Assembly (NCBI GenBank): GCA_030390025.1
Contig: CM059427.1
Coordinates: 186,496,001 to 186,560,000 of the forward strand
DNA from: Squalus acanthias
Taxonomy: Eukaryota
Length of the DNA: 64,000 bases
Direction of reading: 5' to 3'
Shown here: piece after piece, positions 2,669 to 47,835 of the stretch
Numbering within the stretch: the stretch's first letter is position 1
How the letters are laid out: each line of letters starts with the position of its first letter
Made by a program: the position numbers and the translations under genes
Notes under the pieces: generated by a model
The model's database searches: none
Told to the model about the DNA's origin: nothing
Seen by the model: the letters and a program-made list of their open reading frames with translations, nothing else

Positions 2669-3010
2669 ATTCATATGAGAAGAGTTACACACTTTATCGA
2701 TCAGGCACAGATCACAGTGAACTCGACCTGATTTGCTATAATGTTTATGCTCCTTTGAACACTGCTGCATGGACCTGGAGGTCACGTCATCTTCAAAATC
2801 AGGAGGAAGAAATAGCATCTGTTTCAAAATCTCAGCTCATCAATGTAAACAGGACCTACTTTGGGAGTCGACTGGTGCCCACAGAGACAAAGTTTAATGG
2901 CAAGAACTTCAGTGTGAGGATTGTCCCTGTGCTGTTTGAAGATGCAGGAGTTTACACATGTTCTCTGGAATCATATAAAAGGGTGACCATTAAACTAATC
3001 ACAGTTAAAG
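2669..3010 (+). CDS. Paralog A exon: V-type Ig domain (D3)
   Basis: Acceptor tatcgcag|AT, donor G|gtagg, 342 nt, phase 1-1. Encodes LDLICY..AAWTW..NFSVRI..EDAGVYTC, with canonical B-strand Cys, C-strand Trp and DxGxYxC. Confidence 0.93.
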
Positions 3011-6000
3011 GTAGGAGACAGAATGTTGTCGTTATTTTCAGTGATCAAGTCATTGTTTAAAATCTAAATGATTTTCTTGTTTACACAGTCACAGCTGAAC
3101 CATCTGATGCAGTGACTGAGGGAGACACCGTTACCCTGACCTGCTCTGTCTCTGATGTCACTGGATCAATGAGACTAGCTTGGATCAGTACTGATGGCAA
3201 AACTGTTGGAGAAAAAACATTGAATGGATTGAATGGGGAAGAGAAATCATTGAGACTGATTATTCCGAAAGCTGACAGAGGCAGAGGGAAATGGAAATGT
3301 GCTTTGTTTCATCAAAACAGTCCCCGGGTTTTAGTCCCGTACTATCTGGAGCCCAGTGGTAAGTGACACAGGGTTTGCTCTTTATACTTATAAACTTGAT
3401 AGAAAATTCTTATCACTTATTGTTCTTGTTGCCCGAAGTAGCCCCTCATTTAATTGTAGTGTAATTAGTAGCATTGATTTGATTTAATTTAATTTAAATT
3501 AATTAAAGTGTAAGTCATGGCAGCACAGCTCGGCCCCGTGGTATGCTCCTCCTGCACTATGTGGGAAATCAGGGACACTTCCTGTGTCCCTGACGACCAG
3601 GTGTCTGGGAAGTGTATCCAGCTGCAGCTACTGGCAGATCGCATTGTGGCGCTGGAGCTGCGAATGGATACATACTGGAGCATTCGCGATGCTGAGGACC
3701 GTCATGGATAGCACGTTTAATCAGTTGGTCACACCACAGGTAAAGGCTGCACAGGCAGGAAGGGAATGGGTGACCGCCAGGAAGAGTAGTAGGCACAGGC
3801 AGGTAGTTCAGGGGGTCCCCTGTGGCCATCCCCCTCTCAAACAGATATACCGCTTTGGATATTGTTGAGGGAGATGGCTTATCGGGGGAAGGCAGCAGCA
3901 GCCAACTTCCTGGCACCATGGGTGGTTCTGCTGCACAGGATGGGAGGAAAAAGAGCGGGAGAGCTATAATGATAGGGGATTCTATTGTAAGGGGAATAGA
4001 TAGGCGTTTCTGCGGCCGCAAACGAGACTCCAGGATGGTATGTTGCCTCACTGGTGCAAGGGTCAAGGATGTCTCGGAGCGGCTGCAGGGCATTCTGGAG
4101 AGAGAGGGTGAACAGCCAGTTGTCGTGGTGCATATAGGTACCAACGATATAGGTAAAAAACGGGATGAGGTCCAAAAAGCTGAATATAGGGAGTTAGGAG
4201 GTAAATTAAAAAATAGGACCTCAAAGGTAGTAATCTCTGACGTGCTAGTCAGAGTAGAAATAGAAGGATATTTCAGATAAATACGTGGCTAGAGAATGGT
4301 GCAAGGGGGAGGGATTCAAATTCCTGGGACATTGGAACCGGTTCTGGGGGAGGTGGGACCAGTACAAACTGGACGGTTTGCACCTGGGCAGGACCGGAAC
4401 TGATGTCCAAGGGGGAGTGTTTGCTAGTGCTGTTGGGGAGGGTTTAAACTAAAATGGCAGGGGGTTGGTAACCTGTGCAGGGAAACAGAGGAAAAGGGAA
4501 ACAAGGATAGAAGCAAAAGACAGGAAGGAGAAAAGCAAAAGTGGAAGGCAGAGAAATCAAGGGTGTAAATCAAACATGGCCACAGTAAACAATAATCCAA
4601 ACTTCAGGCTCAGAGAAACTCATCTTCTCTGCCTGTCTCAGCTGATCCTGGAAACATTGGAGCCTCATCACTCTCATTCTAACTGAGGGCTCGTGCATTG
4701 TGAGCGCAAGAGCAGGAAACTCGAGGCTCTGGGTGGCCTCCTGAAACAGGCTTTAGGCGTCTTGTACATGCAATTCTGGGTCCTTATGCCAACTGGAGGA
4801 CCCCGATTGAAATTGGTGTACAGATGGGCGGAGCTTATGCTGGGCCAGCTCCAGCTCACTGTACCAGGTTTTGAGTGGATGAACCACTGGTGTTTAACAG
4901 GACCGTTGGAGGCCGCTCAAGAAATGGCCAGAAAACCTTTTAACAGTTACATTTCTGTGGAGCCAGGCGGAGATGGAGTCCTTCTCCTGGCTCCACAATA
5001 ATACTGCGGCCTGGGTTCGACCTCCACACAAGCTCACAGGTTTGGCTCCCCAAAGGACCTACCTGTGGGCTGGTTCAGCATCGAAGCTGGCTGGAATTCA
5101 TCAGGCCCCCACTGGGACACAACAATTGGCGTCTGCGTATCGTCTGTTTCATTCTAATGAGGGCTGATGGTGAATTTCATCTGGCCCCAGGCCGGCAGAG
5201 ACCGGCGCTCAAAACAATCACTTCACCAACTTGATGCCCATTTTGGGCGCAAGTTCAATTTCTCAGACTTGGAACCTGCAGATTTAAAAGCAGAGGAATG
5301 AAAGGGGACCTTAAAGAGCTTTATAAGATAATGAATGGAACAGAAAATATTGGTCTGGAGGAAAATCTCTGGACTGGTATAAGAGGCAGTTGGAGACTGT
5401 GATGATGAGACTGTGAGATTACATCGAAGGATTAGCTGGAGGAACCGACTATCTTCTCTCATCCCTTGTCTTTATTTATCCTCATAATAATAAGGTTGAG
5501 TCCACGAGGGTGCTGCCAGAAAATGAAAAGCGAAGGTGTAGTGTTAGGAGATTTAAATCAGTCAGAAAATATTAAAAGGAGGAAAAAGCATCAGTGGTAC
5601 ATGGCTGAAATAAAGAACAGAGGGAAAAGAAACAAAAAGAAGCATCAGCTATACTAGCTTAAAAAACTCACAGGATTGAAGGAAGCAAAAACCAGTTAGA
5701 CCGTTAAACTCACTGTGAATGCAGCTCTATCACCAACGTTATTTGGGCCGGATTCTCACACAGGTCTTGTGATTCACTGAGCAGTGGGAATTCCTACAGA
5801 GTATCCGTGATCGGCCCCAGACAGCAATTCACCAGCTCAACAGCACCTGTCCACGCACTGAGTGTTAATAATAGGCTCAGCAATATTACAAGGCAAGGTT
5901 TCACACCGAGCAGCACAGTGCGTGGATCCTGCGTTAGCTCCCACACTAGAAACCCCGCCAGAGGAACTTGGGGTCGATGTGAACTATCGGGTGTCTGACC

Positions 6001-9000
6001 GGCGGAGCGGGAGGGCGATGGACGGCCGCCCGATGGTGCTGACGGCAGGCCCAGTCCATGTTGACGGACGGGCCTCATTAGCATCACGCCGGCAGGCCTT
6101 GGGCAGAAATCGATGGGCCGACCGCCTGACTCCACCCGGCCAGCGCTAGGCCCGGGAGAAGATTGCCGCGGCAACAGTGACTGCAGGAATGGGGGGAAGG
6201 GGGACTGAGCCATTCCTGGCCATTTTCCGGGACATTATTATCCTGATTCCACCAGCCGGGAGGCCTCAAAATTCAACCACTCACTCCCTGAACAGTGGGA
6301 TTATTGGTAATTGAATACAATAGTACATTGAGGCTTGCAAACCAGATATTCGAGAAGACAATTACATTGATATGGAGAGTAAACTAAAGACAAATGATTA
6401 GGGGATAGCATGGTAGATCACATTCAATGTTCTGTTTAATAGTTTAAAATTAGGTTTGATAATCTTGACCATGATCAATGCCATGGGAGATGACCCAGTC
6501 CATCATAATTATACTGGAAGTCTGTCTACTGATGAAATTGTCCATTTAGCCTCATCTAGTGTTAAAATATTATATTAATTAAGAATTTGAAATAAAATAT
6601 TAAATTAAATGTACCATAGATAAACATTACAACAGCACACAATACTTTCAAAAACATGCATGGTAGCACTGTTAAACATTAAGGGGGAGAAATTCAGTAT
6701 CGCCCCATTTGGGGCACAATTATCAGCCGGGCGCAAAGATTAGCGCCTGGCACTAATTATCGCCTCCTACTGCAAACTTCACTTTTATCGCCCCTGGAGG
6801 TGATTGGAGCGCTAAATCAGGCGCTTCACACCTGTCTTAAGGTGCAAAGGCCAAGGAGCGAGGCGCTACCTCAGAGCGCTGGCGAAGCTCATGTGATGTC
6901 AGTCAGCAATGGAACACACACACAATGGCGCCAGCCAGTTCTGAAAGGGGAGGGTTGATCTTGCTTTCCATCCACATCCTGCTCATTGCAGCCTTGAATC
7001 TCGGCCTGGAGAGACCTGTACATCAAATCTGTTGGAAAGAACAATGGAGAGTAACAGGGAAAGAGCTCAGAGTGCAGCCCCAACAGTCTCTTCTAAATCG
7101 ATACAAGGAAGGGCAAATCAAAATGAACCTGCAAAGTGCTGCTCAGTACCCAAAACTCCTTCACACAGCGTTGAATCTCTCCAGAAGTCTCTCTCTCTCT
7201 TTCTCAGAATGCGTGGTTCAAAAATGTCACCAACAATAAAAGGCAGGAAGCGGTCACCTTTAAACAGCACTCCCCCAGTCCCTTCCTGACTGCAAAACGC
7301 TCCCCTCAACCTGTTGTTGCTAGCGGAAGGTGGTAAGGCAGGGGGCGCCACTCAATATCCGCTCCGGGGCGCTACCGGGGCGTTGCGCACTCGACTGACG
7401 TCACGATCTGCCGGCGCAGGAGATCGTGGCGGAAGTGTTTAGCGCCGCCGCAAAATGTCTAGTTAATTTCGCGAGCGGCGCAAACATCACCGCGCCCGGG
7501 CGCTAGTTGCTTTGCACCCCATTAGCGTCCTCTTAAGGCGCTAATGGGAGGCGCAACCAACTGAATTTTTCCCCCTAATAGTTTCAACAAAATTGCACTT
7601 TGTCAAAATAGGTGTTTTTTAAGTGAATGCCAGTTGCAGATCTGTGGCTGTCTCACACCTTGATGGTTAATGTCTCTCCAGACAGCACAGCCGAGATTGG
7701 GAAATCGCCACCTGGGGAATCTCAGGTGTGAATCTGTATTCTGCCACTCTGGTCAGGACAACACTTTCACATCCAGTTTATGCCAGTTTAGAAAATGAAT
7801 GACCCAATTTTGAGTTTATTCACTCCCTTTTCATTCCCTCAGAGCTGCTCACTTTAATTCTAAACCATTGCACCCACAAGAATCTGTTGAAAATAGTCAA
7901 ATCCAGACATGTAAAATGTGACAAAAAGAACACAACGTGGACTTGGTCTTGATGGAAATATTTGGTTCTCTGGCTCCCAGTGTTTAAAGCAGAATGTTGT
8001 CACTTTCCACATCTTTTATAGAATGACTGGCAGGAGTATTTAAATATTAAACGAGATGGAGAGTGAAACTAAAATCTCAACTTTGTCCTTCACAGTGAGA
8101 CCACTTCCGGAGATTTGGATCATCACAGTTTTGGGCTACTTGTTGGTTAAACTGGGCGTTGCTGTTGGACTAATTTGCTGCTTGAAGAGGATGACCAGAG
8201 TAAGAATTTCTTTAAGCTTTCCAGTAAATCAGGAATAAGTGCCGAGCTGTCACTTGGCTCTGAGAAAACTGATGTTTGTTGAACAGATATTATGTGGTCA
8301 CAAACTGTATTTTAAAATTTCATTTAAATATTGTACATTGTACTGAATTTAAAGGAATCATCAGTTAAAGAAAGCAATTGTTCCAAATTTGCTGAAATCT
8401 TAGAGCTTTGAATATTTTTCCTGATTCAAACAGCAATAACTTCCCTGCTCCCACTTTCCATCAGGCTCTGAGGAAGGAATCAGGGCGATCTCGGAGGGCC
8501 ATACCTGATTATCAATGAATGGACAATGCTCAAACTAGGAGCCCAATCTTTTAATATTTTTCATTGATTATCACAAATATTCCTCTTGGAAATTAGTAAC
8601 TTGAAAGTTGTCAGAAACCAATATTTGAACAGTTAAAGCACAAACAGTAAAAATTACAATAAAAGGAAATTACTAATGTATTTGGTGACAATTAATGAGG
8701 GCGATCATTTTAATGTGTGCTGTTATTCTTGTTGCTGTGACCTGGTGGCGCTAGAGAGCTGCAGTAGTGTTGGGGCCTAGAAATTAATTTGTCGCTCTAT
8801 AAACCACTTCCTCTGTGGCAGGTTTGGTTCACCTGATTTACTAAAAGGCAAATCTCAGTCGATTCAACAGCCAAGTTTCTGTTTCGGAGAGCCCTGTCGT
8901 GTTTATGTTCGAGGAAGGAGTGTTTCAAGGCTGTGTGCTTCTGGGTGAAGCGAGGCGTTGTAGAATGGGAACTATTGGGGTGAGAGGCACAGAAATGTGG

Positions 9001-10173
9001 TAACTAGTGGAAAGTTTGAACTTACATGAAGGATGTGAGGTAATCTGTATTGTTCAGGATGTTTACAGAGAATTACATAGAATTTACAGCACAGAAACAG
9101 ACATTCGGCCCAGCAGGACGGTGTCGGTGTTTATGCTCCACACGAGCCTCCTCCCACCCTACTTCATCTCACCCTATCGACATATCCTTCTATTCCTTTC
9201 TCCCTCATGTACTTATCCAGCTTCCCCTTAAATGAATCTGTGCTATTCGCCTAAAACACTGCATATGGTTGTGAGTTCCAGCGAGGAAGGAATAGGGAAA
9301 TCTCTGAGGGCCAAACCTGATTATCAATGAATGAAATAAAAACAGAACATTAATGAACATTGCTCACACTAGGAGCCCAATATTCTAGTTTTAAAATTTT
9401 TCATTTAATTTACTATTGCAAATATTCCTCTTGGAAATTGGAAGTTAGTAACTTGATTTTCGTCAGAAACCAATATTATTTGAACAGATGTTTGAAAAAG
9501 CACAACCAGTAAAAATACAATAAACTGAACAGTACGACCTGTATTTAGTGAAAATTAATGATTATGTTAAACTTTACATCAGATCACAGCTCAGGGAGGT
9601 AATAAAAGAGACAGAATCAGTAGCTTTAGTAGGAGAGCATTGTTCTGTCAGAAGCAGAGTTGTCAGTTCAAGGAGGTAACTTTACTGGTGAGGTCAGTCA
9701 ACCACAGGGAGAACCTCTTCGAAATGTGGTCACACTATGGCCATGAACTTCGAGCTCAATGGTGTGACCTTATTTTACATTCATACATTCATTGTAGGAA
9801 ATATCTTCCGCAATATCTTCTATCAGTAACTGGACTTAGTTAATCATTTTAATCAGGTCTGTTCCTTCCAATTACTGAAGTCTTTAATTGTTGAAATTAT
9901 CTCATTAACACTGAGCCAGTGATGTGTGGGTCATGGTCTGTTCTGTTGCCCATTCTGTAAAATTACTCCTCTATTCGACTTCCTCTTTATCCATCACTTC
10001 CAGTCCAGTGTTTATTATTGAAGGATAAGCTCTTTATTTAAAGCACATTTCTTGCCTCTTGTCAGATATCGAACAGCGGGAATCCACACGATGTGACAGG
10101 AAATGAAACAGATGATTCACAAGAAGCCGTCGCATTACAGACCCTGAACTCTGATACTGATCTGAGATCATAG
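2669..10173 (+). CDS. Paralog A (3' part): CD4/LAG-3-like four-Ig-domain type I membrane receptor; exons D3, D4, TM, cytoplasmic tail (leader, D1, D2 lie upstream of the window)
   Basis: Phase-compatible GT-AG exons 2669-3010, 3089-3358 and 8096-8199, then 8465-8518 or 10066-10173. The spliced product is V-set Ig + C2-set Ig + hydrophobic TM + short tail. Intron sequence at 1-2660 is homologous to the D2-D3 intron of paralog B. Confidence 0.85.
3089..3358 (+). CDS. Paralog A exon: C2-type Ig domain (D4) with WxC motif
   Basis: Acceptor ttacacag|TC, donor G|gtaagt, 270 nt, 78-bp intron from D3. Encodes VTAEPSDAVTEGDTVTLTC..LAW..GKWKC. Confidence 0.93.
3517..4596 (+). mobile_element. CR1 LINE ORF1 fragment (Cys-motif/leucine zipper + SGNH esterase), 3' truncated
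   Basis: CSSCTMWE, IPLSNRYTAL, IGDSIVRG and VVHIGTND motifs, with frameshifts. Confidence 0.9.
5745..6280. mobile_element. GC-rich MITE-like element
   Basis: Starts gggccggattct and ends aaaattcaacc, resembling the Harbinger-type TIRs elsewhere in the window. Confidence 0.45.
6683..7575. mobile_element. PIF/Harbinger (Tourist-like) MITE, family 1
   Basis: TIRs gggggagaaattcagt / actgaatttttccccc, TSD TAA (6680-6682, 7576-7578). Related copies at 44603-45403 and 52394-52944. Confidence 0.9.
8096..8199 (+). CDS. Paralog A transmembrane exon (intramembrane Lys, juxtamembrane CC)
   Basis: Acceptor ccttcacag|TG in phase 1, matching the D4 donor; donor AGA|gtaaga in phase 0. Encodes VRPLPEIWIITVLGYLLVKLGVAVGLICCLKRMTR. 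Confidence 0.85.
8465..8518 (+). CDS. Candidate proximal terminal cytoplasmic exon of paralog A (ALRKESGRSRRAIPDYQ*)
   Basis: Polypyrimidine acceptor cccactttccatcag|GCT in phase 0, stop TGA at 8516-8518, AATAAA near 8659. Confidence 0.4.
   Translation, partial: ALRKESGRSRRAIPDYQ
8470..9560 (+). repeat. Dispersed direct duplication of ~230-280 bp (8470-8698 and 9283-9560)
   Basis: gaggaaggaat..gagggcca.acctgattatcaatgaatg..ctaggagcccaat..aaatattcctcttggaaatt..gtcagaaaccaatatt..aattaatga is present twice. Confidence 0.85.
9070..9280 (-). mobile_element. CR1-type LINE 3' fragment
   Basis: Reverse complement of a CR1 tail (acagcacagaaacagacattcggccc..acttatccagcttccccttaaatg). Confidence 0.7.
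10066..10173 (+). CDS. Candidate distal terminal cytoplasmic exon of paralog A (ISNSGNPHDVTGNETDDSQEAVALQTLNSDTDLRS*)
   Basis: Acceptor tttcttgcctcttgtcag|ATA in phase 0, 35 open codons of acidic/polar tail, AATAAA near 10846. Confidence 0.55.
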   Translation: MSNSGNPHDVTGNETDDSQEAVALQTLNSDTDLRS

Positions 10174-10228
10174 AATGACTGATACAGCACAGAAGGAGGC
10201 CATTCAGCCCATCGTGCCTGTGCCCATC
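10170..10228 (-). mobile_element. Very short CR1 3' tail insertion with candidate TSD gagatc
   Basis: atagaat..acagcacagaaggaggccattcagcccatcg matches the reverse complement of the tail at ~54290-54350; gagatc on both sides. Confidence 0.65.
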
Positions 10229-11004
10229 GAGATCTGCAGTCTCTGGAAACTAGATCGATCCAACTTGGGAAACTTTAGAAATAGATTTGTGGTTTTATTC
10301 TGGAGTTATTTTGTGGTATTTTTTATGTAGCTGGTTTAGTTTATATCCCGAAGTGTCCATTTCAATAGTTCCCAGTCTCAGTATCTGTTACTTTACTTTA
10401 CAAGTCCTAACTTGCCAGGTCGCTATAAGAAATTCTAATGGGTGGAAAATCGTGCTGATGTTGGGCTGAATTCCTGATCTCCACTCGGGGCCGGTGAGGC
10501 TCCAGGCTGGGGACACAGTTTTATAACTGTAGGGACTGACGGTGACCCAGTGCTGCAGCCCGGTGTGGAGTTTGAAGTGTTGGGACGTGGATTTGTGACT
10601 GTGGGTCCCCAGTGAGTGATCTCAGCTGGACTCTCTCTGCAGAGGAGCTGAATGGAGCTGAGCTGCTACAAATGAGAAGGATTGAAACTCGGCTCAGTAA
10701 ATATGGGCGTCTCCCCTGCACCTCCCAGCACCTGTTCACACAACGAGATCGCGGAATCTCCGGAGAAGGTTGTCTCCATGCTCCCACCCAGGGAATTGTT
10801 TGCAGCAGAGTGCGACTCAAAGATTAACAGAAAAGAAACAGCATGAATAAAAGTTGTGGAAAAGTAAATCTGCAAATTAAAGTGGGAATGATTCCGGCTT
10901 TGGGAATGTTTTATTAATTTATCCTTAACAATCATTAAAAGCCCTGATAATCAATTGTTTGCTGATATTACTGATAGATTGTGATGAAGAGATTGGTTCG
11001 GAAT

Positions 11005-11240
11005 GGAATGGGAAAGTGTTTCCTTTTGTCATTGAATCTCTCCTGCCCTCCACCCTATCACAGACCTTCCCCTTTGTTCTTTCCTCCCTCTCTTTTCTCT
11101 GGCTCTCTACTTGCTTAAAAATTGTTAAATCTCTAACATCTGCCAGTTCAGTTGAAAGGATATCGAGCTGAAACATTAACTGTGTCTCTCCACAGATGCT
11201 GCCTGTCCTGCTGAGTATATCCAGCATTTTCTATTTTTAT
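11005..11240 (+). mobile_element. Penelope-like element terminal fragment (degenerate)
   Basis: gaaacattaactgtgtctctccacagatgctgcctgtcctgctgagtatatccagcatttt is similar to the arm of the 30087-30312 element. Confidence 0.6.
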
Positions 11241-11343
11241 TCCTCTTTAGGCACGTTGCAATAATGGGGGGAGTACATTTCCCTTTTCGTTTGACTCCAT
11301 TCTTTTAAACATTTGTGGAAATGCATCCAAGGTAATGGATCTG

Positions 11344-11436
11344 TGTACATGATAAACCCCTTCGAATCCAGCACAGCTCCAGTTCTGTACATGATAAACC
11401 CCTTCGAATCCAGCACAGCTCCAGTTCTGGACATGA
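11344..11436. repeat. 42-bp tandem duplication (about 2.2 copies)
   Basis: tgtacatgataaaccccttcgaatccagcacagctccagttc at 11344 and 11386. Confidence 0.95.
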
Positions 11437-11680
11437 CAAGACGGCTCAGCAAAAGCCTGAGATTGTTCTGTGTGAAACTTTCAGGCCTTTGATCTGCTCC
11501 TCGATTTCATAATAAACCTGGACTCACTTCCCCAGATTCTGGGTCACAAATTGTTTATCAAAATGTACAGAAGTATTACAGTGAATGAAAATGAGGCCAA
11601 GAGAGATTCCCTCAACTGAAGTGAGGTGTGATCTGGTTGCTGAGTCGTCGCCTCCTAATCCAAGTTCAGAGAGTCCCTTC

Positions 11681-13244
11681 TGTAAGGTTTCCAAAATTTG
11701 CAGATCCCCAAAACCTAAGGAAAAAGGACTTTGGAACTACCCCAGAGTGATAAAAATGCATTTGGACCTAACATAAGGAATTTAAGACCAAAACCAAGCT
11801 TTGGCATTTTAAAAGGACATGTCTGGACATGTGAGGGAGAAAAGGCTGCACAAGACGTGGGATCAACCTCTGTAAATAGCAGTTTTGTGTATTGCATTGT
11901 CTGGGAATCGGGATGACCTCACTCAAGCCCCAGCAAGCATTTAACATTTGACAATAGGCCCTGGGAGAAGGCAGCCCCACCCAAAACACAGGCCTCATTA
12001 AAACCTATCGCAGACCCATCAAAACCATGCATAATTCGAAGAATTCAAGACACCTTTTGAATATCCCCAGGCCCAAACAGGATGCCAGAAGCCTGTAAAC
12101 AATAAAACATCTAGTACAGCCATTACTTCATCAAAAACCAATCAGCCAGGTATCTATAGGAACAAGATTTGGCGTGTAGATAAAGGCCCTGCCTAAATGG
12201 GAGACATCGGAAGTCATCAGGACAATTTAACACCAAGATAAACCCATCAAAACTTAACAAGCCCGCAAAACCAAGACAATGGAATGAACAGGCCTCAACT
12301 GAAACCTAAATCACTTCAACACGAAACCGATTTAGTAAGGGGTTTTGGCGCGAAAAAGACAAAGGGTCTGAACTGTATAATTGAGGGCCTAATCCCCCAA
12401 GAAGGTCTCTCGCAGCTCTGTTCCAGTTGCAGCAAGTTCCAGCAAGACACTACCAGCCACATGACACGAGCAGGAGGAGGAGAGAAGCAGCAAGGCCACG
12501 AGGCAGACCTGGGGCGAGATCGGAGGCAAGGACAGACTAGGCCAGGCAAGGGCTGGAGCTGAGGCCACTGGGAGTGAGTCGGCATCGCTCAGCACACGAT
12601 CTAGCACTAGCAGCCACTAGCCAAGGTCACTGGAGGCTGGGAGCGAGTCGGCATCGCTCAGCACACGGTCCAACACTAACAGCCACTAGCCAAGGTCACT
12701 GGAGGCTGGGAGCGAGTCGGCATCGCTCAGCACACGGTCGAACCCCAGAAGGTACCGCCCCGACAAGCCTCCAATGCAACAAAACTCGACGACCAGACCA
12801 CCATCGCAGATTTCACAGACCGGTACCACGTGGGGACAGCAGGCACCAAAGGACAAAAGAGAGTACCTCAAAATCGCAATCAACTTACCTGGCTGAATTT
12901 CGCACTGTCAAAACCCCTGTTTGGTGAGCATTATCCCTGATCTCCTGAAACCGAAACCTAGCTCGATAGTGGGATTTTGGGGAGGGATAAGGGTTTTTGT
13001 ATTATGTCATTCTCCCTCGCCTGTACCATGTGTTCCCAAACCTGTTTAAGTGTTAAGTGTGTTTTAAGTTTGTTACCTTTTCTTTTAATAAAAACCAAAA
13101 TTCTTTCATCGTAACCTGTTGTCTACTGCATCTTTATTCACAACCCCTAAATAAGTCCAAGGTCTGGAACCTGGGACGTGGGAGCGATTCGAACCGCTCA
13201 CTGAGTCAGAGGTGAGGCTGACCCCTACCACACCACCCCCTACA
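11681..13244 (+). mobile_element. Solo LTR (~1.56 kb), ERV/Gypsy-type
   Basis: TGTAAGG...CCCTACA termini, 4-bp TSD cttc, TATA-like tataatt ~12375, AATAAA ~13087. Homologous inverted copy at 56163-57797. Confidence 0.88.
12568..12739 (+). repeat. 69-bp tandem repeat (2.5 copies) inside the solo LTR
   Basis: Units start at 12568, 12637 and 12706, each with the hairpin gagcga-gtcggca-tcgctc. Confidence 0.95.
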
Positions 13245-14878
13245 CTTCTCATCCATTGTCTGTTCCAGACTGAGGAGAATCTGTGGGAGATGAGTGACTA
13301 AATATCAAACTGTGTGGGAGAGGGAGGTCATTGGGAGGAGGGACGGCCCATCACCGCCTCAGGTGCCAGTGCTGCCCTCATCCTGAGAATAAATATAAAA
13401 ATGATCCTTTTTCAGTGTGTATTTTCCAGAAGTTTCCACCACAGCCTGCATTCTGCAGGGAAATAAAGTTTCATCTCATCTTAACTCTGCCCTCAAGTTA
13501 CATATTTTTACCCAGCTCCTGTAGTTTTATATTCATAATTCAACTTAAACTACCTAAATTGTCAGTCTCTCTCATCATTTTAAAGATTTTGATCATGTCA
13601 TGTGTCCCCCTCAGTCTTCTTCATAGAATCATAGAATGGTTTTTCCCTCAGGTACTTATCCAATTCCCTTTTGAAAGCCACAATTGAGTCTGCCTCCACC
13701 ATCCTTTCAGGCAGTGCATTCCAGATCCTAACCACTCGCTGCGTAAAAAAGTTTTTCCTCATGTCGCCTTTGGTTCTTCTGCCAATCACCTTAAATTTGT
13801 GTCCTCTGGTTCTCCACCATTCCACCAATGGGAACAGTTTCTCTCTATCTACTCTGTCCAGAACCCTCATGATTTTGAACACCTCTATCAAATCTCCTCT
13901 CAACCTTCTCTGCTCTAAGGAGAACAACCCCAGCTTCCCCTGTCTATCCACATAAATGAAGTCCCTCATCCCTGGAACCATTCTTGTAAATCTTTTCTGC
14001 ACCCTCTCTAAAGCCTTCACATCCTTCCTAAATTGCGGTGCCCAGAATAAGAACATAAGAACATAAGAAATAGGAGCAGGAATAGGCCACTTGGCTCCTC
14101 AAGATTCAATAGATCATGGCTGATCTTGGACTCAAAGCCACTTCCCTGCCCGCTCCCCATAACCCTTCACTCCCTTATCTTGTAAAAATCTGTCTATCTC
14201 CACCTTAAATGTATTTAATGACCCAGCCTCCACGGCTCTCTGGGGCAGAGAATTCGACAGATTTACGACCCTCTGAGAGAGGAAATTCCTCCTCATCTCA
14301 GTTCTAAAAGGGTGACCCTTTATTCTGAAACTATGCCCCCGAGTTCTAGAGTTCCCCACGAGGGGAAACATCCTCTCTGCATCTACCTTGTCGAGCCCCC
14401 TCAGTATCTTATATGTTTCAATAAGATCACCTCTCATTCTTCTAAATTCCAATGAGTATAGGCCCAAGCTGCTCAACCTTTCTTCATAAGTCAACCCCCT
14501 CATCTCAGGAAACAACCAAATTGGACACATTACTCCAGTTGAGGCCGAACCAGTGTTTTACACAGGTTCATCAGAACGTCCTTGCTTTTGTACTCTATTG
14601 GCTGGATTTTGTCAGTGGATGCGGGTTGGGGTCGGGTCAGGTGGTCGGCGGGTCCGGACCCCGCCTCCGATGTGAGGCGGGACAATGGAGCCATTTTGCC
14701 CTAATTAGGCACTTGATTTCCAGCGTGTGGGACCCCCTGGCCCAATGAGTCTTTTGGTCCTGAAACTCGCCTCTGATGACGTCATCTATGCAGCTGCATT
14801 TAAGGCCTGTAGCAGCCTTAGTTCTTTTTCTGCCTTACAACTTTTGCAATTTACTTCTGAGGGATTCGTGCAACAACC

Positions 14879-16886
14879 ATGTCAGGCACAAGACGGAAGT
14901 GTGCACCCCGCTTCGATGAGAACTCCCTCCAAGCTCTCATGGAGGGAGCAAGAGCGAATAAGGAAGTGCTGTTTCCTTCTTCAGGGAGGAAAAAGCCTCC
15001 ACAACAGACCAAAGCTGTGTGGCTGCAAGTGGCACAGGAGGTGAATGTCATTTCAATGTGCAGCTGAACCTGGCTGCAGTGCCGAAAGAGGTTTCATGAC
15101 CTTCTCCGCACAGGAAAAGTGAGTATTCCATCCACATGACCCTCAATCTCATCCCCATCGCCTCTCATCACCAGCACTCTGCTTTGACAACCTCCTCCTC
15201 CACATCCCACTTGACCCTTACATCCCTGCACCCTTACCCATTCCCTCTCTCTGTATGTACACATTCACTTAACTATTCGACTATGCAGCCCTCACACTCC
15301 CTATCACTGTGATGCTATGACAACAACTTACAACACACAAGAAGGGCCCTTGGTCTTGGCACCTCATTCCATCTTTGTGTCCTTCTAAGCATCAATGCTA
15401 TGGATTCTCTACACTCACTCCTTCATTCTCACTCAAACTCCACTTGTGTCCCTCATTGGAGGAAAAGAGAGCCCACAATAAGAGGGAGAGGGCGAGGACA
15501 GGAGTAGGGCCACCCTCAGTAGCCCAGCTCACCAGTGCAGAGGAGGCGGCCCTGGAGATCATGGGAGTGGAGGAGGATGCGCATGTGGGGGACGGACAGA
15601 CGGGCGCATCAGAGCAAGATTGTGACAGAATAGTTTTTCATCTCTCTCATTGACATTGCATGAGTGACTGATATTGATTCTGATGCTCTAACAGATTGAC
15701 TTATGATCATCTGCAGAATTCAATGTCCATACAATGTTTATCTCACATGTCTAACTCTTTCCTTTACTCCCCCACAGGACCATCGACAGCCTCCCTCCCC
15801 ACTGTCCAGGAGGAACAGCCTGAGATCCCAGACTCCTCGGAGGAAGCTGCAACCTCTGAGGGCACAGCGTCAGCTGAATTAAGCGCACCCAGCACCAGCG
15901 CAGACACTCACACCTCGGTGGGACCTTCGGGAGATAGATTAGAGTTGTCACCTGGTATATCACTGCTCACAAGTGAGCATCAGCAGATGGTGGAGACAGG
16001 GACAGCAGTGGAGAGTCCTCGTCGGAGGGTGCAGGGCACTCCCAGCTCGGCTCCACTGCATGTCGACCCTGTGCCTCCGGGTCCATCCAGAAAGAGAGCG
16101 GTGCTGGAACTCCAGGAACAGGTGCAGTAGTCTCTGGCAGATTTAGTCTCCAGGGTCGCTGTGAGTGTGGAGCGAATGGAAAAGTCCATCGCTTACATGA
16201 GCAGAGCCTTTGTGGAGGCATTGGCGCATGAACGCATCACCATGGAAAGGATGGCAACCTCCGTGGAAAGGATGGCTACTTCCGTGGTAAGGCTGGCTAC
16301 CATAGAGGAGAGGATGACTACGGTAGAGGAGAGGATCGCTACGGCCATGGAGGAGCTTAGTTGCCAGGGTCTTGAAAACATGGTCATTGTTCAGAATAGA
16401 CTGACATCTCTTGAGGAGCGATGATCAGCTATTGAGCAGAGAAACCAGACCTTCATGGAAGTCCTCTGGAGTAGGACTTCCAGTGCAGAAACGGGTCCTC
16501 ATGGCCCCCCTGAAGTGCAGCAAAGTGCTGTCAAGCCACTTGCTAGCTCTGAAGTGGGGCTGACCCATGAGAGGGATATTGGTGGCAGAGAACAAGGAAG
16601 TGGGGGCTCCTCTCCAAGCGCTCACATGACCATGCCACTGCAGAGCCCTTGGTCAGAGCCCCACCAGGGTCCTCAGCCAACTGAGATCGGCATCTCAGCC
16701 ACTGCACAGCCGCAGGAGCAGCAGACTCTTGCCGAACCCTCACAGGGTCGCAACCCCAAAGGACGGCCGCAAAAGGTGTCGAGACAGGAGCAGCAAGAAA
16801 GTGAGCAAGGGGCCTCCACATCTGCTGAAGCCACAGGGGAAGCACCACGTAGGAGTACGCGTAAGCGGAAGATAAAGCACAAGTAG
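14879..16886 (+). pseudogene. Harbinger Myb/SANT-like (trihelix) DNA-binding gene, three exons, in-frame stops
   Basis: APRFDENSLQALMEG..W..VAQEVN..TWLQCRKRFHDL (14879-15118, donor gtgagt); EKRAHNKRERARTG exon ~15462-15620; long exon ~15778-16886 with ERMATSV heptads and basic end RRSTRKRKIKHK. Confidence 0.88.
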
Positions 16887-17144
16887 TCACAAGGGTAGTA
16901 ACTTGGGTGTAATGTTGTGTTTATTTTTGAAAAGCCATCCTTGAATTGATGTGATAAAAAAACTTGATGGCAAACTGTTGAAGTTGTGGGCTGTGTCATT
17001 TCGCAAATGGGACTTCCACATTGAGGGCTTAGGGCGACTAGTAATTGTTGGTATGGAAGTCAGAGTGATAGGAATCTGCATGTTCTTGGCCATTGTCGAT
17101 GCTCTGGTAAAAAGGTGCGAGGCAAAAGTGTTTGATTGTGCAGG

Positions 17145-34355: not shown

Positions 34356-34443
34356 ATGAGGCTACGATTTTTCTGCAGCAAAATGCCAGCTGGTTTGATG
34401 TTCAGTTTCTTTGTGTTTCTACTTCCGTCTGTTTTCACACAAA
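34356..34443 (+). CDS. Paralog B signal peptide exon (MRLRFFCSKMPAGLMFSFFVFLLPSVFTQ)
   Basis: ATG at 34356 (second ATG 34383), hydrophobic core, donor A|gtaagt in phase 1 compatible with D1. An upstream acceptor tttcttacag at 34333 suggests a separate 5'UTR exon. Confidence 0.75.
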
Positions 34444-34477
34444 GTAAGTGCCTTATTTCCACCAATCACATTCATAT

Positions 34478-37573: not shown

Positions 37574-37914
37574 GAAACACAAATCATATGTATTTTTTGG
37601 ATGAGGGAGATGACATTCCATTAAAAGGACCGGACAATCCTGGGAATGGCCCTGTTGTCTGGGAATGGAAACCACACTCAGGGCAAGAAATCCAGCGACT
37701 GGTTACTTTTCACAAAGGGAGTTCGAGTCGGTGGACGCACAATGGAACAATCACATTGGAAACAAGGAGTTGTACAAAAAGGCATTGCAGGATGGTGGTT
37801 CCATTAATCTGAGAATTAGAAAACCCACATTTAAACTTGCGGGATCGTTCATCTTGACTCAAACACAGCCAAGTAATAAAAGGCTGAAACAGTACGAAAT
37901 ATTTGGGATCAAAG
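37574..37914 (+). pseudogene. Paralog B exon D1: cysteine-free V-like Ig domain with 1-nt deletion near 37735
   Basis: Acceptor ttctaacag|GA, donor G|gtgagt. The N-half (..IPLKGP..VVWEWKP..RLVTFHK..RW) and the C-half (AQW..SINLRIRKPTFKLAGSFIL..YEIFGIK) are in different frames (ORFs 37555 and 37665). Confidence 0.8.
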
Positions 37915-38163
37915 GTGAGTGCAACAAAGTCTAGAAAAGGTTCATTAATATGAATCTCCAAAAATAATTTTACTTGTACAGATGAGAGATTGCCAGGATC
38001 ACGTGAGATTTATATCACCCAGTGCAGAGAGCATCTCTCATTAAAACAACCTGGGGAAAGATTCTGCTCATTGTTTCTCCTGAAATGGTCAACATGAGTA
38101 AAAACATTTCGACAATTTCACCAGAAATATCAAACCGAGAAATCTACCACATGAGATATTATG

Positions 38164-41700: not shown

Positions 41701-41970
41701 TTGAGTCAAGTCCACAGAGGCCTTTGCTGGGCAGTGAAGTTACACTCAGCTGTACCATCTCCAAACTCTCAGATACAGTCAGTCTTCAATGGAAACAGAG
41801 AGACTCATCTCAGCCGAACAGGAGCAACACTGATCAGATCCGACTAAATAACACAGTCTATCTGATAGTCAAACATGTTGCAGTAGAGGATAAGGAGTTG
41901 TACGCGTGTGAAGTGCAGGAACATGGATCCATTTTTCTCACAGGAAAAGCTGATTTTTCTATGAACCAAT
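41701..41970 (+). CDS. Paralog B exon D2: C2-type Ig domain
   Basis: Acceptor tttttcacag|TT, donor T|gtaagt, 270 nt. Encodes VESSPQRPLLGSEVTLSC..LQW..VYLIV..EDKELYAC, with sequons NRS and NNT. Confidence 0.92.
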
Positions 41971-43035: not shown

Positions 43036-43442
43036 GTGGCATAGTGGTTAGCACTGGTGCCTCACAGCGCCAGGGACCCGGGTTCGAATCTGACCTCGGG
43101 TGACTGTCTGTGTGGAGTTTGCACATTCTCTGCGTGGGTTTCCTCCGGGTGCTCCGGTTTCCTCCCACAGTCCAAAAATGTGCGGGTTAGGTTGATTTGG
43201 CTATGATAAATTGACCCTTAGTGTTAGGGGGGGATTAAATATGTGGGGTTATGGGGATAGGATGGGATATGTTAGGGGGAATTAAATACGTGGGGTTATG
43301 GGGGTAGGGTGGGATATGTGTACTGTGGGGATTAAAGCAGGGACAGTGTACTGGACTTGGATGATCAGCCATGATCGTATTGAATGGTGGAGCAGGCTCG
43401 ACGGGCCGAATGGCCTACTCCTGCTCCTAGATTCTATGTTTC
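43036..43442 (+). mobile_element. tRNA-derived V-SINE (HE1-like) with CR1-type tail
   Basis: A box tggcatagtgg, B box ggttcgaatc, V-domain ctgtgtggagtttgcacattctc..gggtttcctccgggtgctccggtttcctcccaca, TSD tatattcg. Confidence 0.92.
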
Positions 43443-43847
43443 TATATTCGATGTGTTGAGGGACAGGGAGCTAGTATGTGCCAGTGAGGATGGGCGAGGA
43501 GGTTTTAGTGTGGGAGAGAATGCAGACAGGTAATTTTGATTTTGTGCGATAGTAATTCATCTTTGTGAGATATAAAACGTGTTGCCAATTCGATGTCACC
43601 TGCTTTACACTATCGCACAAAGGCTAATTACCCCCATGTTTCTGTGAGAAAGCATCAGGATTGCTCCCTGGACAATAAGGAAAGGATTTCCAATGTTCCA
43701 ATCTTGTCAACTGCCAAGTTGTATTGCAACAGCAATTAAAATGACTGTTGGATAGTCTTGGTGAGAAAATTTGAAGGCTTTAGTAGAAATAGAGAAAAAG
43801 AAAGTAAGAAAGAAAGTGAGAAAGAAAGAAAGCAAGAAAGAATGTGC

Positions 43848-45610
43848 TGTTGAGATTAGCCTATTTGTTAATATTAACTTATCTCAAGTCTTTCAAATAA
43901 TCAGGATCGACTGCTAACCAATATGGCGGGAATATTGTGTTTTGTCAGGGTTTAAGATGGAATATAACACACTAGTAACACAGCAAAAACATACGACCGT
44001 AAGATACAGCTAGTACCGGTCCCGATCGGACGGACGGCTGGCGTGCGCCAACAGTTCTCCGGCTTGTGGCCTTCCTCTCTCTCGTCTAGAACCTCCAAGA
44101 ATGGGTTGAGTTCGCTCCCTGAAGAGTGTTAGACCAGTCTCACTCTTGTATAGCTCTCCCCTCCACCGTCTGTGCTAAGAACTTTTAGGGTCTTGCTATT
44201 ATTCCCTTTTCAGGGGTGGGCCTGATGTACAATATGGACAGGACTATTTGACCTGTAAGGTTTCTTCCTAAACCAATGGCACGGCGAGTTCTTTCTCTCA
44301 ACTCTCAGAGGAAAACCCTCCCCAAGTTTGGAGTCAGACATGCCATTCTTGGCCTTCAGATGTTCGTAGCTGCTTGTTATCAGTTATTTATGTTCAAGCT
44401 GTTCATGTAACTTTAGCTGTGCAAAACTATGTCATTCCATTATCAAACTATTGTACCATGGAATGAATCATTAAATTCCCAAAGGTATCCTCTATTCTGT
44501 TCTCACACACTGGTTAACTTATGCATTTTAAAGTAGTTTTGTTAAACCAAGTCAAAATTCTAACTTACAAACAGCAGATAGCTAGCTTGGTAAGAAGATT
44601 ATTGCGGAAAAATTCGGTTGATTCGCGCCTCCCGTTAGTGCCCTAAGAGGGCGCTAACGGGGCGCAAACCAACTAGCGCCCGAGCGCGGCGAGGTTTGCG
44701 CTGCTCGCAAGATTGACCAGACATTTTGCGGTGGCGTTAAACACTACCGCCACGATCTCCTGCCCCCGCAGATCGTGACGACAGTCGAGCGTGCAACGCC
44801 CCGGTAGCGCCCCGGATCGGATATTGAGTCGCGCCCCCTGCCTTAGCACCTGCCGCTAGGAACGACAAGTAATGGGGAACGTTTTCAAGTCGGGAAGGGG
44901 CTGGGGGTGCGCTATTTAAAGCCGGGCGCTTCCTGCATTTTTTGTTGGCAAAATTTTGGGGTTTAACGCTGCCCTAATGAGGTTTGGCCCTCAGCACCAC
45001 TTTTGAGGTTCCTAAGCACCGAGCTCTTTCCCTGCGCCTATCCTTTAGTGCTTCCACACAATCAGTTTTGAGGCCTCTCCAGGTCGAGATTCAAGGCTGC
45101 AATGAGCAGGGTGTGGCTGGCCAGCAAGATGGCCCCTCCCCTTTAAGAACTGGATGGCACCAGTCTGTCTGGCTTCCATGGTAATTGGCATCGCCTGAGC
45201 TTCGGTAATGTTCTGAGGTAGCGCCTCACTTCCTGACGTTTGCGCCTTAAGAGAGGTGTGTAGCGCCTGATTTAGCGCTCAAATCACCTTCGGGGCGATA
45301 GAGGCAAATTTTGCAGTCGGAGGCGATAATTAGCACCAGGCGCTAAACTTTGCGCCCGGCCAGTATTAGCGCCCCAAAATGGGCGATACCGAATTTCTCC
45401 CACTATATATATCCGTCACAGTGTCGATGCTATAACATCCGCAGAGAACCAAAACACAAGCGGATTCTAAGCATCTATCTAGTTATTCTAATACTATTCT
45501 GATGAGACTTTTTGTCTCCAGTTCTAATACAGTCATGTAAACACAGTCTTATTCGCGTCACAGTTTCATTCTCATAACCCCATATAACTTGGATACCCTA
45601 TTTTCTAACA
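43848..45610. mobile_element. Probable solo LTR (~0.96 kb) with nested MITE
   Basis: TGTTGAGA...TCTAACA termini, flanks gtgc/gtac, absent from the paralogous site in A (~880). Confidence 0.7.
44603..45403. mobile_element. Harbinger MITE, family 1 (inverted relative to 6683-7575)
   Basis: Degenerate TIRs ggaaaaattcgg / ccgaatttctcc, TSD TAT. Confidence 0.88.
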
Positions 45611-46139
45611 GTACAGAAAATGCACAGGTATAAAGCCTGTGCAGAATGGTCAATGCAGATGTGGACAGATGTTCACTGTGAAAAAACCTACAAGTTGCCA
45701 CCAACTCAAACAACAGCGACCTTGCTTTAAGGATTATGTTAAAGTGGGCCAGGCCCATGGAGCAGACTTGTACCCATTTTACATGGGGGAGGTGAGCTCT
45801 GAGGCAGAATTTTGCACAAACTCGTTACAGTTCAGCAGAGGACCTTCTTTGAATAATTATTCCATGTAAATGAGGATTGAACTTGCCTGAAGGAACCATA
45901 TTTGTTCCGTTGCAAAATTCTAAGCAACCTGCAGCCGCCACCAGCAGGACTCCATGTTGCTGGCCCAGCCTCAGAATATTGGGCCTGTGATGTCATGGTG
46001 TCATCCATGGCACAAAAACCTCATCATATTAAAAATCAAAAAGGTTTCATTTTTCTAAATTTCTGTTGTCTTTTGGGAATTGAATTCAAACAATTTGTAC
46101 AATTTTGAAAAAATTCATAGTTTTGACAAAACCTTTTTT

Positions 46140-47015
46140 CATTCATTCCAGGGACGTGGGTGTCTCTGGCAAGGCCAGCATTTATTGTCCCTCCCTTATT
46201 GCCCTTGAGAAGCTGGTGGTGAGCCGCTTTCTTGAACCGCTGCAGTCCCTGTGGTGAAGGTACTCCCATGGTGCTGTTAGGGAGGGAGTTCCAGGATTTT
46301 GACCAAGCGATGATGAAGGAACAGTGATATATTTCCAAGTCAGGATGATGTGTGATTTGGAGGGGAATTTGGAGGTAGTGGCGTTCCCATGTGCCTGCTG
46401 CCCTTATACTTCTGGGTTTGGGAGGTGCTGTCGAACAAGCCTTGGCGAGTTGCTGCAGTGCATCTTGTAGATGGTACACACTGTAGCCACGGTACGCCGG
46501 TGGTGGAGGGAGTGAATGTTTAAGGTAGTGGATGGGGTGCCAATCAAGCGGGCTGCTTTGTCCTGAATTGTGTCGCACTTTGAGTATTATTGGAGCTGCA
46601 TTCATCCAGGCAAGTGGAGAGTATTCCATCACACTCCTGGCTTGTGCCTTGTCGATGGTGGAAAGCCTTTGGGGAGCCAGGCAGTAAGTCACTCACCGCA
46701 GAATACCTAACTTCTGATCTGCTCTTGTAGCCGCAGTATTTATGCGGCTGGTCTAATTTCTGGTCAATGTTGACCCCAGGATGTTGATGGTGGGGGATTC
46801 GACGAATGTTACTTGCCACTTATCAGCCCCAGCCTGAATGTTGTCCAGGTCTTGCTGCATGCGGGCATGGACTGCTTCATTATCTGAGGAGTTGTGAATG
46901 GAACTGAACACCGTGCGGTCATTAGTGAACATCCCACTTCTGACCTTATGTTGGAGGGAAGGTCATTGATGAAGCAGCTGAAGATGGTTGGGCCTAGGGC
47001 ACTGCCCTGAGGAAC
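46140..47015 (-). mobile_element. CR1/L2-group LINE (second family) 3' fragment
   Basis: VPQGSALGPTIF and RSVMEYSPLAW motifs; absent from the paralogous intron of A. Confidence 0.88.
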
Positions 47016-47148
47016 TTGATCAAATGAAGTAATGAAGATCAAAATGCAAGTATTTTTATATAATTGTGGTCAGTAATTAGTCTGGCTTTTCTCTGCAGCT
47101 CAGCAATTGTAAAATTCTAACACGTTGTTCTCTGTCTCTCTATTGCAG

Positions 47149-47487
47149 ATTTATATCAAGAGAGTTACACGCTTTATCGATCAGGCACAGATCACAATGA
47201 ACTCGACCTGATTTGCTATTATGCTTCTTCTTTCAACACTGCTGCATGGACCTGGAGGTCACGTCATCTTCAAAATCAGGAGAAAGCAATAGCATCTGCT
47301 TCGATATCTCAGCTCATCAATGTAGACAGGACCTACTTTGGGAGTCGACTGGTGCCCACAGTGGCAAAGTTTAATGGCAAGAACTTCAGTGTGAGGATTG
47401 TCCCTGTGCTGTTTGAAGATGCAGGAGTTTACACATGTTCTCTGGAATCATATAAATTTGTGACCATTAAACTAATCACAGTTAAAG
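47149..47487 (+). CDS. Paralog B exon D3: V-type Ig domain
   Basis: Acceptor tattgcag|AT, donor G|gtagg, 339 nt open; paralogous to 2669-3010. Confidence 0.93.
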
Positions 47488-47565
47488 GTAGGAGACAGAA
47501 TGCTGCCGTTGTTTTCAGTGATCAAGTTATTGTTTAAAATCTAAATGATTTTCTTGTTTACACAG

Positions 47566-47835
47566 TCACAGCTGAACCATCTGATGCCGTGACTGAGGGA
47601 GACACCGTTACCTTGACCTGCTCTGTCTCTGATGTCACTGAATCAATGAGACTTGTTTGGATCAATAGTGATGGCAAAACTGTTGGAGAAAAAACATTGA
47701 ATGGATGGAATAGGGAAGAGAAATCATTGAGACTGATTATTCAGAAAGCTGACAGAGGCAGAGGGAACTGGATATGTGCTTTGTTTTATCAAGACAGGCC
47801 CCGGGTTTTAGTCCCGTACTATCTGGAGCCCAGTG
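47566..47835 (+). CDS. Paralog B exon D4: C2-type Ig domain with WxC (GNWIC)
   Basis: Acceptor ttacacag|TC, donor G|gtaagt, 270 nt; paralogous to 3089-3358, with the same 78-bp upstream intron. Confidence 0.93.

Follow-up and report, generated by a model that had tools for sequence, protein, structure and literature searches.

Two tandem four-Ig receptor genes of Squalus acanthias as probable members of an unnamed multigene family with a V-C2-V-C2 ectodomain

Introduction

What kind of receptor is encoded by the two sets of immunoglobulin (Ig)-domain exons found in a 64,000-nucleotide stretch of the Squalus acanthias genome (assembly GCA_030390025.1, contig CM059427.1, positions 186,496,001 to 186,560,000; hereafter the window, to which all positions refer), and would it be wired for activation? 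The window is vertebrate DNA rich in repeats, with zero N, and both sets of exons lie on its + strand with canonical AG/GT borders. An initial annotation of the sequence had described them as a tandem group of four-Ig immune receptors related in shape to the CD4/LAG-3 family, for which Triebel 1990 is said to be the reference. Based on the evidence gathered here, it is quite likely that the window contains two tandem members, gene A and gene B, of an old and unnamed multigene family of type I receptors with a V-C2-V-C2 ectodomain (domains D1 to D4), gene A being of the activating type.

Results

Family members and their two tail types

A phmmer search with the D3 domain of gene A among 1.84 billion representatives recovered 77 proteins at E<=1e-3, of which 30 reach E<=1e-10. 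The first ten matching clusters come from catsharks, bamboo sharks, bullhead shark, sevengill shark, sawshark, sawfish, manta rays, skate and elephant shark, and sturgeons, bichirs, eels and tarpon are among ten weaker representatives. In both groups, the proteins are labelled 'uncharacterized' or 'hypothetical', one isoform in the Heptranchias cluster among the weaker representatives being named CEACAM5-like. A profile of the family (A1), built from an alignment of 14 full-length members, matched 119 proteins, of which 115 are chondrichthyan (E<=4e-62), with several loci in many species. This bears out the multigene character proposed in the initial annotation. About 40 of the proteins have 850-1030 residues, that is, eight Ig domains, and one sawshark cluster (90% identity) holds 15 distinct sequences. 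Also, the nurse shark cDNA product AGQ17915.1, deposited as 'obscurin-like protein', is a family member. A second profile, made from ray-finned members, matched 33 proteins, which apart from one weak centipede match are from tarpon, eels, other elopomorphs and salmonids; nearly all the ray-finned relatives are without names, one being called CEACAM1-like. Judged from these matches, the range of the family runs from chimaera and sharks as far as sturgeon, eels and salmonids. The number of domains varies within it, since among the annotated isoforms or genes P0005 joins its leader to D2 and P0016 is without D2.

The full-length homologues end in two ways. One group has a transmembrane (TM) segment like that of gene A (…GYLLVKLG…) followed by a short tail that matches the last exon of gene A, and the other has a plain hydrophobic TM followed by a long tail with YSN, (E/D)IHYAS(V/I) and (I/V)IYAQI. 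The membrane-proximal YxN of the long-tailed members appears as LYSNA, VYSNI or IYENV. The immunoreceptor tyrosine-based inhibitory motif (ITIM) has the consensus (S/I/V/L)xYxx(I/V/L), which both IHYASV and VIYAQI fit. When regular expressions were run over the 115 chondrichthyan proteins, the TM motif with lysine (Lys-TM) was found in 22 and IHY[AGS]x[IVL] in 42, no protein had both, and 51 had neither, many of these being fragments. Carriers of the Lys-TM motif include sharks and rays. That the Lys-TM/short-tail and the ITIM-tail forms exclude each other agrees with the earlier proposal of an analogue of natural killer (NK)/myeloid receptor clusters.

Moreover, the two forms are not separated by their ectodomains. 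Over 85% of its length, P0146, of the IHY type, is 97% identical to P0006, a Pristiophorus (sawshark) protein of the Lys-TM type. A tree of 185 D3 domains places those of genes A and B as sisters (support 0.895), in a group with Pristiophorus domains that include both tail types (support 0.74). Taken together, the tree and the P0146/P0006 identity indicate that the ectodomains track lineage and not tail type. Such ectodomains combined with mutually exclusive tails, as predicted from these proteins, constitute the pattern of paired activating/inhibitory receptor families. Two tail forms are also found among the ray-finned relatives (P0212-P0240, eels and salmonids): the tails of some carry V(Y)SNI … VVYASV or VIYSTL, and others are short-tailed, their TM region containing R/K in eels and R/E in salmonids (…VVRVVIVVLATLGMLKVL…). 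The presence of two forms here too suggests that the pairing arose before cartilaginous and bony fishes diverged.

The names given by automatic annotation would invite another reading, in which the family would count as a generic Ig-superfamily group of adhesion or B7 type with no paired signalling role. Among the 115 chondrichthyan relatives, six bear names other than uncharacterized, and all of these are of that kind: obscurin-like (2), VCAM1-like (1) and CD276 homologue (3). Also, the best Protein Data Bank (PDB) match of the D4 exon is CD276, restricted to residues 1-36 (E 3e-4). However, CD276 does not appear in the top 60 PDB matches of the family profile, and the strict dichotomy between Lys-TM and ITIM forms, together with the species-specific expansions, are marks of immune paired receptors and not of adhesion proteins. 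We consider the adhesion or B7 reading very unlikely.

Gene A, a putative activating-type receptor

The features of both genes are collected in Table 1. The homology between genes A and B starts at A 607 = B 43541, 3' of the D2 exon of gene B, so that D1 and D2 of gene A lie before the start of the window, which holds, according to this alignment, only the 3' half of the gene. The D3 exon matches the Pfam V-set model with an E value of 3.5e-5, under the curated cut-off, and the D4 exon matches the ig model with 27.5 bits, over the cut-off; the intron between them measures 78 nt. The TM exon is matched by 14 homologues in tblastn, with E values down to 1.9e-13, and contains the sole Lys-TM motif across the six frames of the window. 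In the predicted helix, GYLLVKLGVAVGLICC, the lysine occupies position 13 of about 23. The last coding exon, which had no position in the initial annotation, was located by tblastn with the tails of P0006, P0081, P0029, P0091 and P0092 (E 7e-10 to 4e-7). The cytoplasmic part of gene A has 43 residues, CCLKRMTR followed by ISNSGNPHDVTGNETDDSQEAVALQTLNSDTDLRS, and contains no tyrosine and no other docking motif.

Table 1. Features of the two receptor genes in the window.
Feature	Position	Strand	Description
Gene A side of the tandem duplication block	607-3452	+	Partner 43541-47930, interrupted by repeat insertions
Gene A D3 (V-type Ig domain)	2669-3010	+	342 nt, phase 1 to 1; from sequence and splice sites
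Gene A D4 (C2-type Ig domain)	3089-3358	+	270 nt, phase 1 to 1; KWKC = WxC
Gene A TM exon	8096-8199	+	104 nt, phase 1 to 0; RPLPEIWIITVLGYLLVKLGVAVGLICCLKRMTR; mid-helix lysine
Gene A last coding exon	10066-10173	+	Phase 0; 35-residue tail, no tyrosine; stop TAG 10171-10173
Gene B leader exon	34356-34443	+	In-frame ATGs 34356 and 34383; MPAGLMFSFFVFLLPSVFTQ; donor phase 1
Gene B D1 (V-like domain without cysteines)	37574-37914	+	341 nt; frame switch near 37728-37740
Gene B D2 (C2-type, YxC in strand F)	41701-41970	+	270 nt, phase 1 to 1; junction FGIK-VES
Gene B D3	47149-47487	+	339 nt, phase 1 to 1; shorter than A by one BC-loop codon
Gene B D4	47566-47835	+	270 nt, phase 1 to 1; NWIC

With a lysine within the membrane and a short tail free of tyrosine, the product of gene A is most likely an activating-type receptor, as had been proposed from the outset. 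In this case, the mid-membrane lysine would pair with the TM aspartate of an adaptor of the DAP12 or FcR-gamma kind, which bears an ITAM (immunoreceptor tyrosine-based activation motif), and the short tail would contribute no signal of its own. The ITIM-type sister genes, with near-identical ectodomains, would recruit Src homology 2 (SH2) phosphatases and oppose the activating forms, in the manner of the KIR, LILR, SIRP and CD300 pairs. Expression of the family would be in immune cells, as we infer. A mid-helix lysine is typical of DAP12 partners, and an arginine near the outer leaflet is typical of FcR-gamma partners. Exceptions to this rule are described (PMC8102735). It weighs against this part of the proposal that the coupling of gene A to an adaptor would follow from the lysine alone.

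The splicing of gene A was addressed with public sequencing runs, scored for sampled words of 2669-3358; none reached at least half of them, and the best score was 0.33. Four runs (X1, X2, X4 and X21) were aligned to 2660-8659 at 88% likeness. Contigs in X2 and in X4 join 3010 to 3089 and 3358 to 8096, both with GT..AG borders, and loose ends at 3087 in X1 and X4 read the end of D3. In X1 and X2, depth is observed over the D3, D4 and TM bin and is zero in the unique intron bins (4660-5659 and 7660-8059), which corresponds to an RNA pattern; X21 covers the whole 2660-8659 stretch and is DNA-like. The D3-D4-TM splice model of gene A is supported by these data. Some features of the runs count against giving them full weight, however. 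Their RNA nature is a guess, each joint is supported by 26-29 letters on either side (88% likeness), and the runs with spliced contigs carry no tissue label. Moreover, all four differ from the window at fixed places (e.g. 2822 and 3191), so the spliced contigs may derive from a relative, another individual or a paralogue.

Two further observations come from X4. One contig has a loose end at 3359, where the end of a D4 exon continues into 93 off-window letters whose start is D1-like (…NYIYFFH); this contig would be a transcript of an eight-Ig paralogue, with D4 spliced to a second D1. Another (record 29) spans 6174-6679 and 7576-8124, and a repeat of about 0.9 kb (6680-7575) in the D4-TM intron of gene A is absent from that source.

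Kinship of the ectodomain with CD4 and LAG-3

Along the ectodomain, the domains follow the order V-C2-V-C2. Pfam assigns V-set to D3 and ig, Ig_3 or Ig_2 to D2 and D4, D1 aligns with D3, and the alignment of the 14 members agrees with this arrangement. There are no linker residues at the V-to-C2 exon junctions, FGIK-VES between D1 and D2 and ITVK-VTA between D3 and D4; in the CD4/LAG-3 family, strand G of V continues as one beta-strand into strand A of C2. The WxC motif noticed earlier is present in D4 of both genes (KWKC in A, NWIC in B), its tryptophan being found in 13/14 and its cysteine in 14/14 of the aligned members. Comparison of the two halves of the ectodomain by hhalign gave a probability of 98.3% for D1-D2 against D3-D4 (E 2.2e-14, 166 contiguous columns). 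The single-domain pairs D1-D3 and D2-D4 gave 95.8% and 95.3%, and the controls D1-D4, D1-D2 and D3-D4 gave at most 1.8%. These values point to an ectodomain that would have been built by tandem duplication of a V-C2 unit, as proposed for CD4/LAG-3.

The relationship to CD4/LAG-3 claimed in the initial annotation receives support from a search of the A1 profile against 177,635 distinct PDB sequences, in which human LAG-3 (7tzg) ranks first (E 1.4e-12), LAG-3 is also third and fourth, and CD4 is sixth (E 2.1e-10). The best LAG-3 stretch runs from strand F of the family D3 through all of D4 and aligns with LAG-3 from strand F of D1 through D2; it spans the V-to-C2 junction, kWaC/pWGC and the terminal YkLev/YNLTV. 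A second stretch aligns to D3-D4 of LAG-3. Language-model features gave similar leads in the ESM Atlas, whose scores come with no alignment or E-value and are to be taken as leads only: for P0006, the CD4 and CD4-1 clusters occupy ranks 5 and 8, and for the D3-D4 part of this protein, LAG3 occupies rank 6.

However, several results weigh against a specific kinship. The best single LAG-3 stretch has an i-E value of 1.3e-5, to be compared with 6.8e-5 for pIgR, which ranks second in the PDB search, and titin and NCAM are also high. The D1-D2 half matched no CD4 or LAG-3 stretch in this search. CD4/LAG-3 have WxC in strand F not only of D4 but also of D2 (PMC10768021), whereas D2 of the family has YxC in 14/14 aligned members. 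When the exons D3 and D4 were used singly (phmmer against PDB), the matches were MXRA8, CEACAM1, PD-L1, CD276 and antibody chains, not CD4/LAG-3; these are generic Ig matches, and the single-exon search was discarded as a means of placing the family. Likewise, Pfam returned generic Ig models only, both for the exons and for the 14 full-length members. PF05790, the C2-set model of the CD4 cluster in the Atlas, is neither in the 13 families of P0006 nor among 25 of the 38 families listed for the 14 members. Finally, the Atlas places Contactin-2 and two g6f-like clusters above CD4 for P0006. On balance, a specific kinship of the family with CD4/LAG-3, with or without G6F-like, is slightly favoured by these sequence comparisons.

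If the ectodomain resembles that of CD4 and LAG-3, could the locus be a bona fide shark CD4 (or LAG-3) gene accompanied by a pseudogene fragment, as around CD4 in the small-spotted catshark? Pseudogene fragments of CD4 do lie beside the S. canicula gene (PMC10768021), the ectodomain plan is shared, and LAG-3 and CD4 rank high in the profile search. The initial annotation had set the genes apart from CD4/LAG-3 by the missing CxC/CxH Lck-binding motif of CD4 and by the missing D1 intron. The second argument is invalid: D1 is intron-free in shark CD4 and in shark LAG-3 (PMC10768021), as it is here, and the missing intron has therefore no weight in sharks. The separation itself stands on the cytoplasmic tail. 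Shark CD4 has a CxH motif and a long tail with an extra exon, and shark LAG-3 has an (F/Y)xxL(D/E) tail motif (Takizawa et al. 2023, PMC10768021). In the tail of gene A (8 + 35 residues, with a single tail exon and no extra one), neither Cx(C/H) nor (F/Y)xxL(D/E) is found, and there is no F or Y at all, so gene A is neither CD4 nor LAG-3. Moreover, its TM carries a lysine, the family has many copies per species, and 0/115 chondrichthyan relatives are named CD4 or LAG-3, names that automatic annotation does give to the shark genes (PMC10768021). In consequence, we regard an identity with CD4 or LAG-3 as extremely improbable.

The Atlas ranks raise a different possibility, namely that the family is nearest to G6F or G6F-like and hence of platelet/thrombocyte type, not NK/myeloid. 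Ohashi et al. reportedly found in 2010 that G6F-like is similar to CD4/LAG-3. For P0006, the two g6f-like clusters are second and third (0.97), and the long-tailed members of the family keep a membrane-proximal YxN. The teleost protein G6fL likewise combines four Ig-like domains with YxN (PMC3528668). Nonetheless, no protein is named G6F or G6F-like among the 33 matches of the ray-finned profile and the 119 matches of the shark profile, the tails of the family are ITIM-like and do not contain the ITAM that defines G6fL signalling, and the Atlas scores are leads. A platelet/thrombocyte-type family closest to G6F seems to us unlikely, and the reading of an NK/myeloid-type paired family is preferred.

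Gene B and the tandem duplication

Gene B, as judged from its alignment with gene A, is a recent duplicate. In a blastn comparison of 1-14000 against 14001-64000, the two genes are colinear, with a D3-D4 block that is 92% identical in DNA, and the colinear homology stops at A 7578 = B 52922, about 0.5 kb 5' of the TM exon of gene A. The D3 domains share 95/112 aligned residues (17 differ), apart from one BC-loop codon, and the D4 domains share 77/89 (12 differ). The coding differences amount to 31 non-synonymous and 6 synonymous, with a non-synonymous rate (dN) of 0.070 and a synonymous rate (dS) of 0.044 (dN/dS 1.6), and in the flanking non-coding DNA, 4/78, 15/133 and 8/94 aligned bases differ. 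There is thus no apparent sign of purifying selection between the two genes, and diversifying selection and decay of gene B cannot be separated on this basis. Positive selection is not claimed because, with only 6 synonymous and 31 non-synonymous differences, the ratio of 1.6 is indistinguishable from neutrality by a rough estimate.

The exons of gene B include a leader, matched by the N-termini of 15 homologues in tblastn. Its signal peptide is preceded by two in-frame ATGs (34356-34385; MRLRFFCSK-MPAGLMF…); the upstream one is also the start in the annotated homologues P0006, P0082, P0003 and P0092, and a comparable pair of ATGs is described in the CD4 cDNA of the nurse shark (Takizawa et al. 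2023, PMC10768021). The D2 exon matches Ig_2, Ig_3, C1-set and ig in Pfam, all over their cut-offs. The reading frame at the start of the D1 exon (…VVWEWKPHSGQEIQRLVTFHKGSSSRW) is not the one at its end (DAQWNNHIGNKELY…YEIFGIK), and the entry frame reaches a TGA stop at 37810-37812. With 341 nt, it is one base short of an open 342-nt exon and hence out of frame as assembled, and its two halves have no Pfam match. The full-length homologue P0006 reads uninterrupted across the place of the frame switch. A short intron was considered as a cause of the frame change; inspection by eye for GT..AG pairs gave 60, 64 and 70 nt, all of them too short and none of the needed length class, and this explanation was rejected. 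The frameshift could be either an assembly slip or a real lesion.

Accordingly, what the initial annotation said of the exons holds in part. The exons are real, lie on the + strand and have canonical borders, but the chain from leader to tail was a composite stitched from two genes. In the same way, one domain per phase-1 exon is correct for D2, D3 and D4 and does not apply to D1 of gene B as assembled.

No second TM exon, which would be that of gene B, was found in the window up to 64000, either by tblastn or by blastn with word size 7, and neither ITIM-type exons nor further Ig exons were found inside the window. The 16 kb downstream of the D4 exon of gene B, where a TM exon is missing, are occupied by a reverse transcriptase of the long interspersed nuclear element (LINE) type and other repeats. 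Gene B would be a pseudogene or else form the first cassette of a longer gene. If it is a dead copy that arose by decay, the window has one working gene. This would be in line with the out-of-frame D1, with the lack of a TM exon and the repeats inserted in its place, and with a dN/dS near the neutral expectation. On the other hand, D2, D3 and D4 of gene B are open with intact splice sites, the NCBI models of another shark skip D1 (P0005), and the frameshift could be an assembly error. Also, since eight-Ig proteins of 850-1030 residues are frequent among the relatives, the D4 of gene B could splice to a further cassette, and the X4 contig described above passes from the end of D4 into a D1-like start. 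We give the death of gene B an even chance.

Repeats and mobile elements

The window contains no other conserved gene, only repeats. A transposase domain, DDE_Tnp_4 (Harbinger-type; E 3.8e-11), is encoded in an open reading frame (ORF) at 17507-18166 on the - strand, and this ORF is flanked by two inverted copies of an ORF-bearing repeat of about 1.5 kb, at 15375-16886 (+) and 21342-22887 (-). The proteins encoded by these copies are rich in serine and glutamine, contain MERMATS-type repeats and match nothing in Pfam. A LINE-type element at 49787-52306 (-) carries a reverse-transcriptase ORF (RVT_1, E 2.3e-19) together with ORFs upstream of it. Its insertion site is 3' of the D4 exon of gene B, at the place that corresponds to the D4-TM intron of gene A, and fragments related to it are present at 3787-4596 and 52989-53813.

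Discussion

The genes described here are already in public annotation, where they go without a name. What would be new is a paired-receptor multigene family on the CD4/LAG-3 ectodomain plan. Our literature search found no paper describing the family, although its coverage of subscription journals is thin and this is not proof of absence. For example, the main text of the 2023 study of CD4/LAG-3 evolution (PMC10768021) does not mention it, the words 'multigene' and 'uncharacterized' having 0 occurrences there, and 'obscurin' does not appear in the main text of Venkatesh 2014. To our knowledge, no diversified paired receptor family of NK or myeloid type with a defined ligand is established in cartilaginous fishes. 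The family provides a concrete gene set for testing both the origin of the CD4/LAG-3 pair and the paired receptors of cartilaginous fishes.

A further step would be to see in it a third branch of the CD4/LAG-3 superfamily, one not described before, which would predate the cartilaginous/bony split and would have been paired and multigene from the start, giving the polymorphic innate NK- or myeloid-type receptors of sharks and rays, possibly with ligands like major histocompatibility complex (MHC) class II, as for CD4 and LAG-3. This scenario is a speculative one, to which we assign a low probability. If true, the family would show in living species what CD4 and LAG-3 arose from.

Among known systems, G6F-like (G6fL) of teleosts is the nearest named receptor cluster by the language-model features of the Atlas, and it shares with the family its four Ig-like domains, its single TM and the YxN of its cytoplasmic part (PMC3528668). 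However, G6fL is a single gene of thrombocytes that signals through an ITAM of its own, with YxN and ITAM divided between two exons, whereas the tail of gene A has no tyrosine and its sister genes have YxN with ITIM-like motifs.

The resemblance to paired receptor clusters (KIR, LILR/PIR, SIRP and CD300; NITR, LITR and DICP in fishes; MDIR in skate) concerns the organization of the genes. In all of them, there is a tandem multigene cluster with lineage-specific expansions, near-identical ectodomains are carried on a charged TM with a short tail or on ITIM tails, and paralogues differ chiefly by amino-acid-changing substitutions. The difference lies in the ectodomain, which in this family is of the CD4/LAG-3-type V-C2-V-C2 and not of the C2 type (KIR, LILR, LITR) or of the CD300/pIgR-like V type. 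The modular domain immune-type receptors (MDIR) of skate have V-type domains related to CD300/TREM/pIgR (PMC3031540). None of the 119 profile matches, in which skates are well represented, is an MDIR by name.

Finally, the family is like CD4/LAG-3 in having four Ig domains in the order V-C2-V-C2 with one phase-1 exon each and no V-C2 linker, in the lack of a D1 intron (as in shark CD4/LAG-3), in the WxC of strand F of D4 and in a probable origin by V-C2 tandem duplication. Also, its D1 is poor in cysteines, as known in some CD4 molecules, and LAG-3 is the best PDB match of its profile. It is unlike CD4/LAG-3 in the YxC of D2, in the lack of Cx(C/H) and (F/Y)xxL(D/E), and in its tails, which are either short behind a Lys-TM or ITIM-like; no annotation seen names it CD4 or LAG-3, and it has many copies per genome, some of them with eight Ig domains. 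The CD4/LAG-3 ectodomain plan would be found here in dozens of copies with opposing tails.

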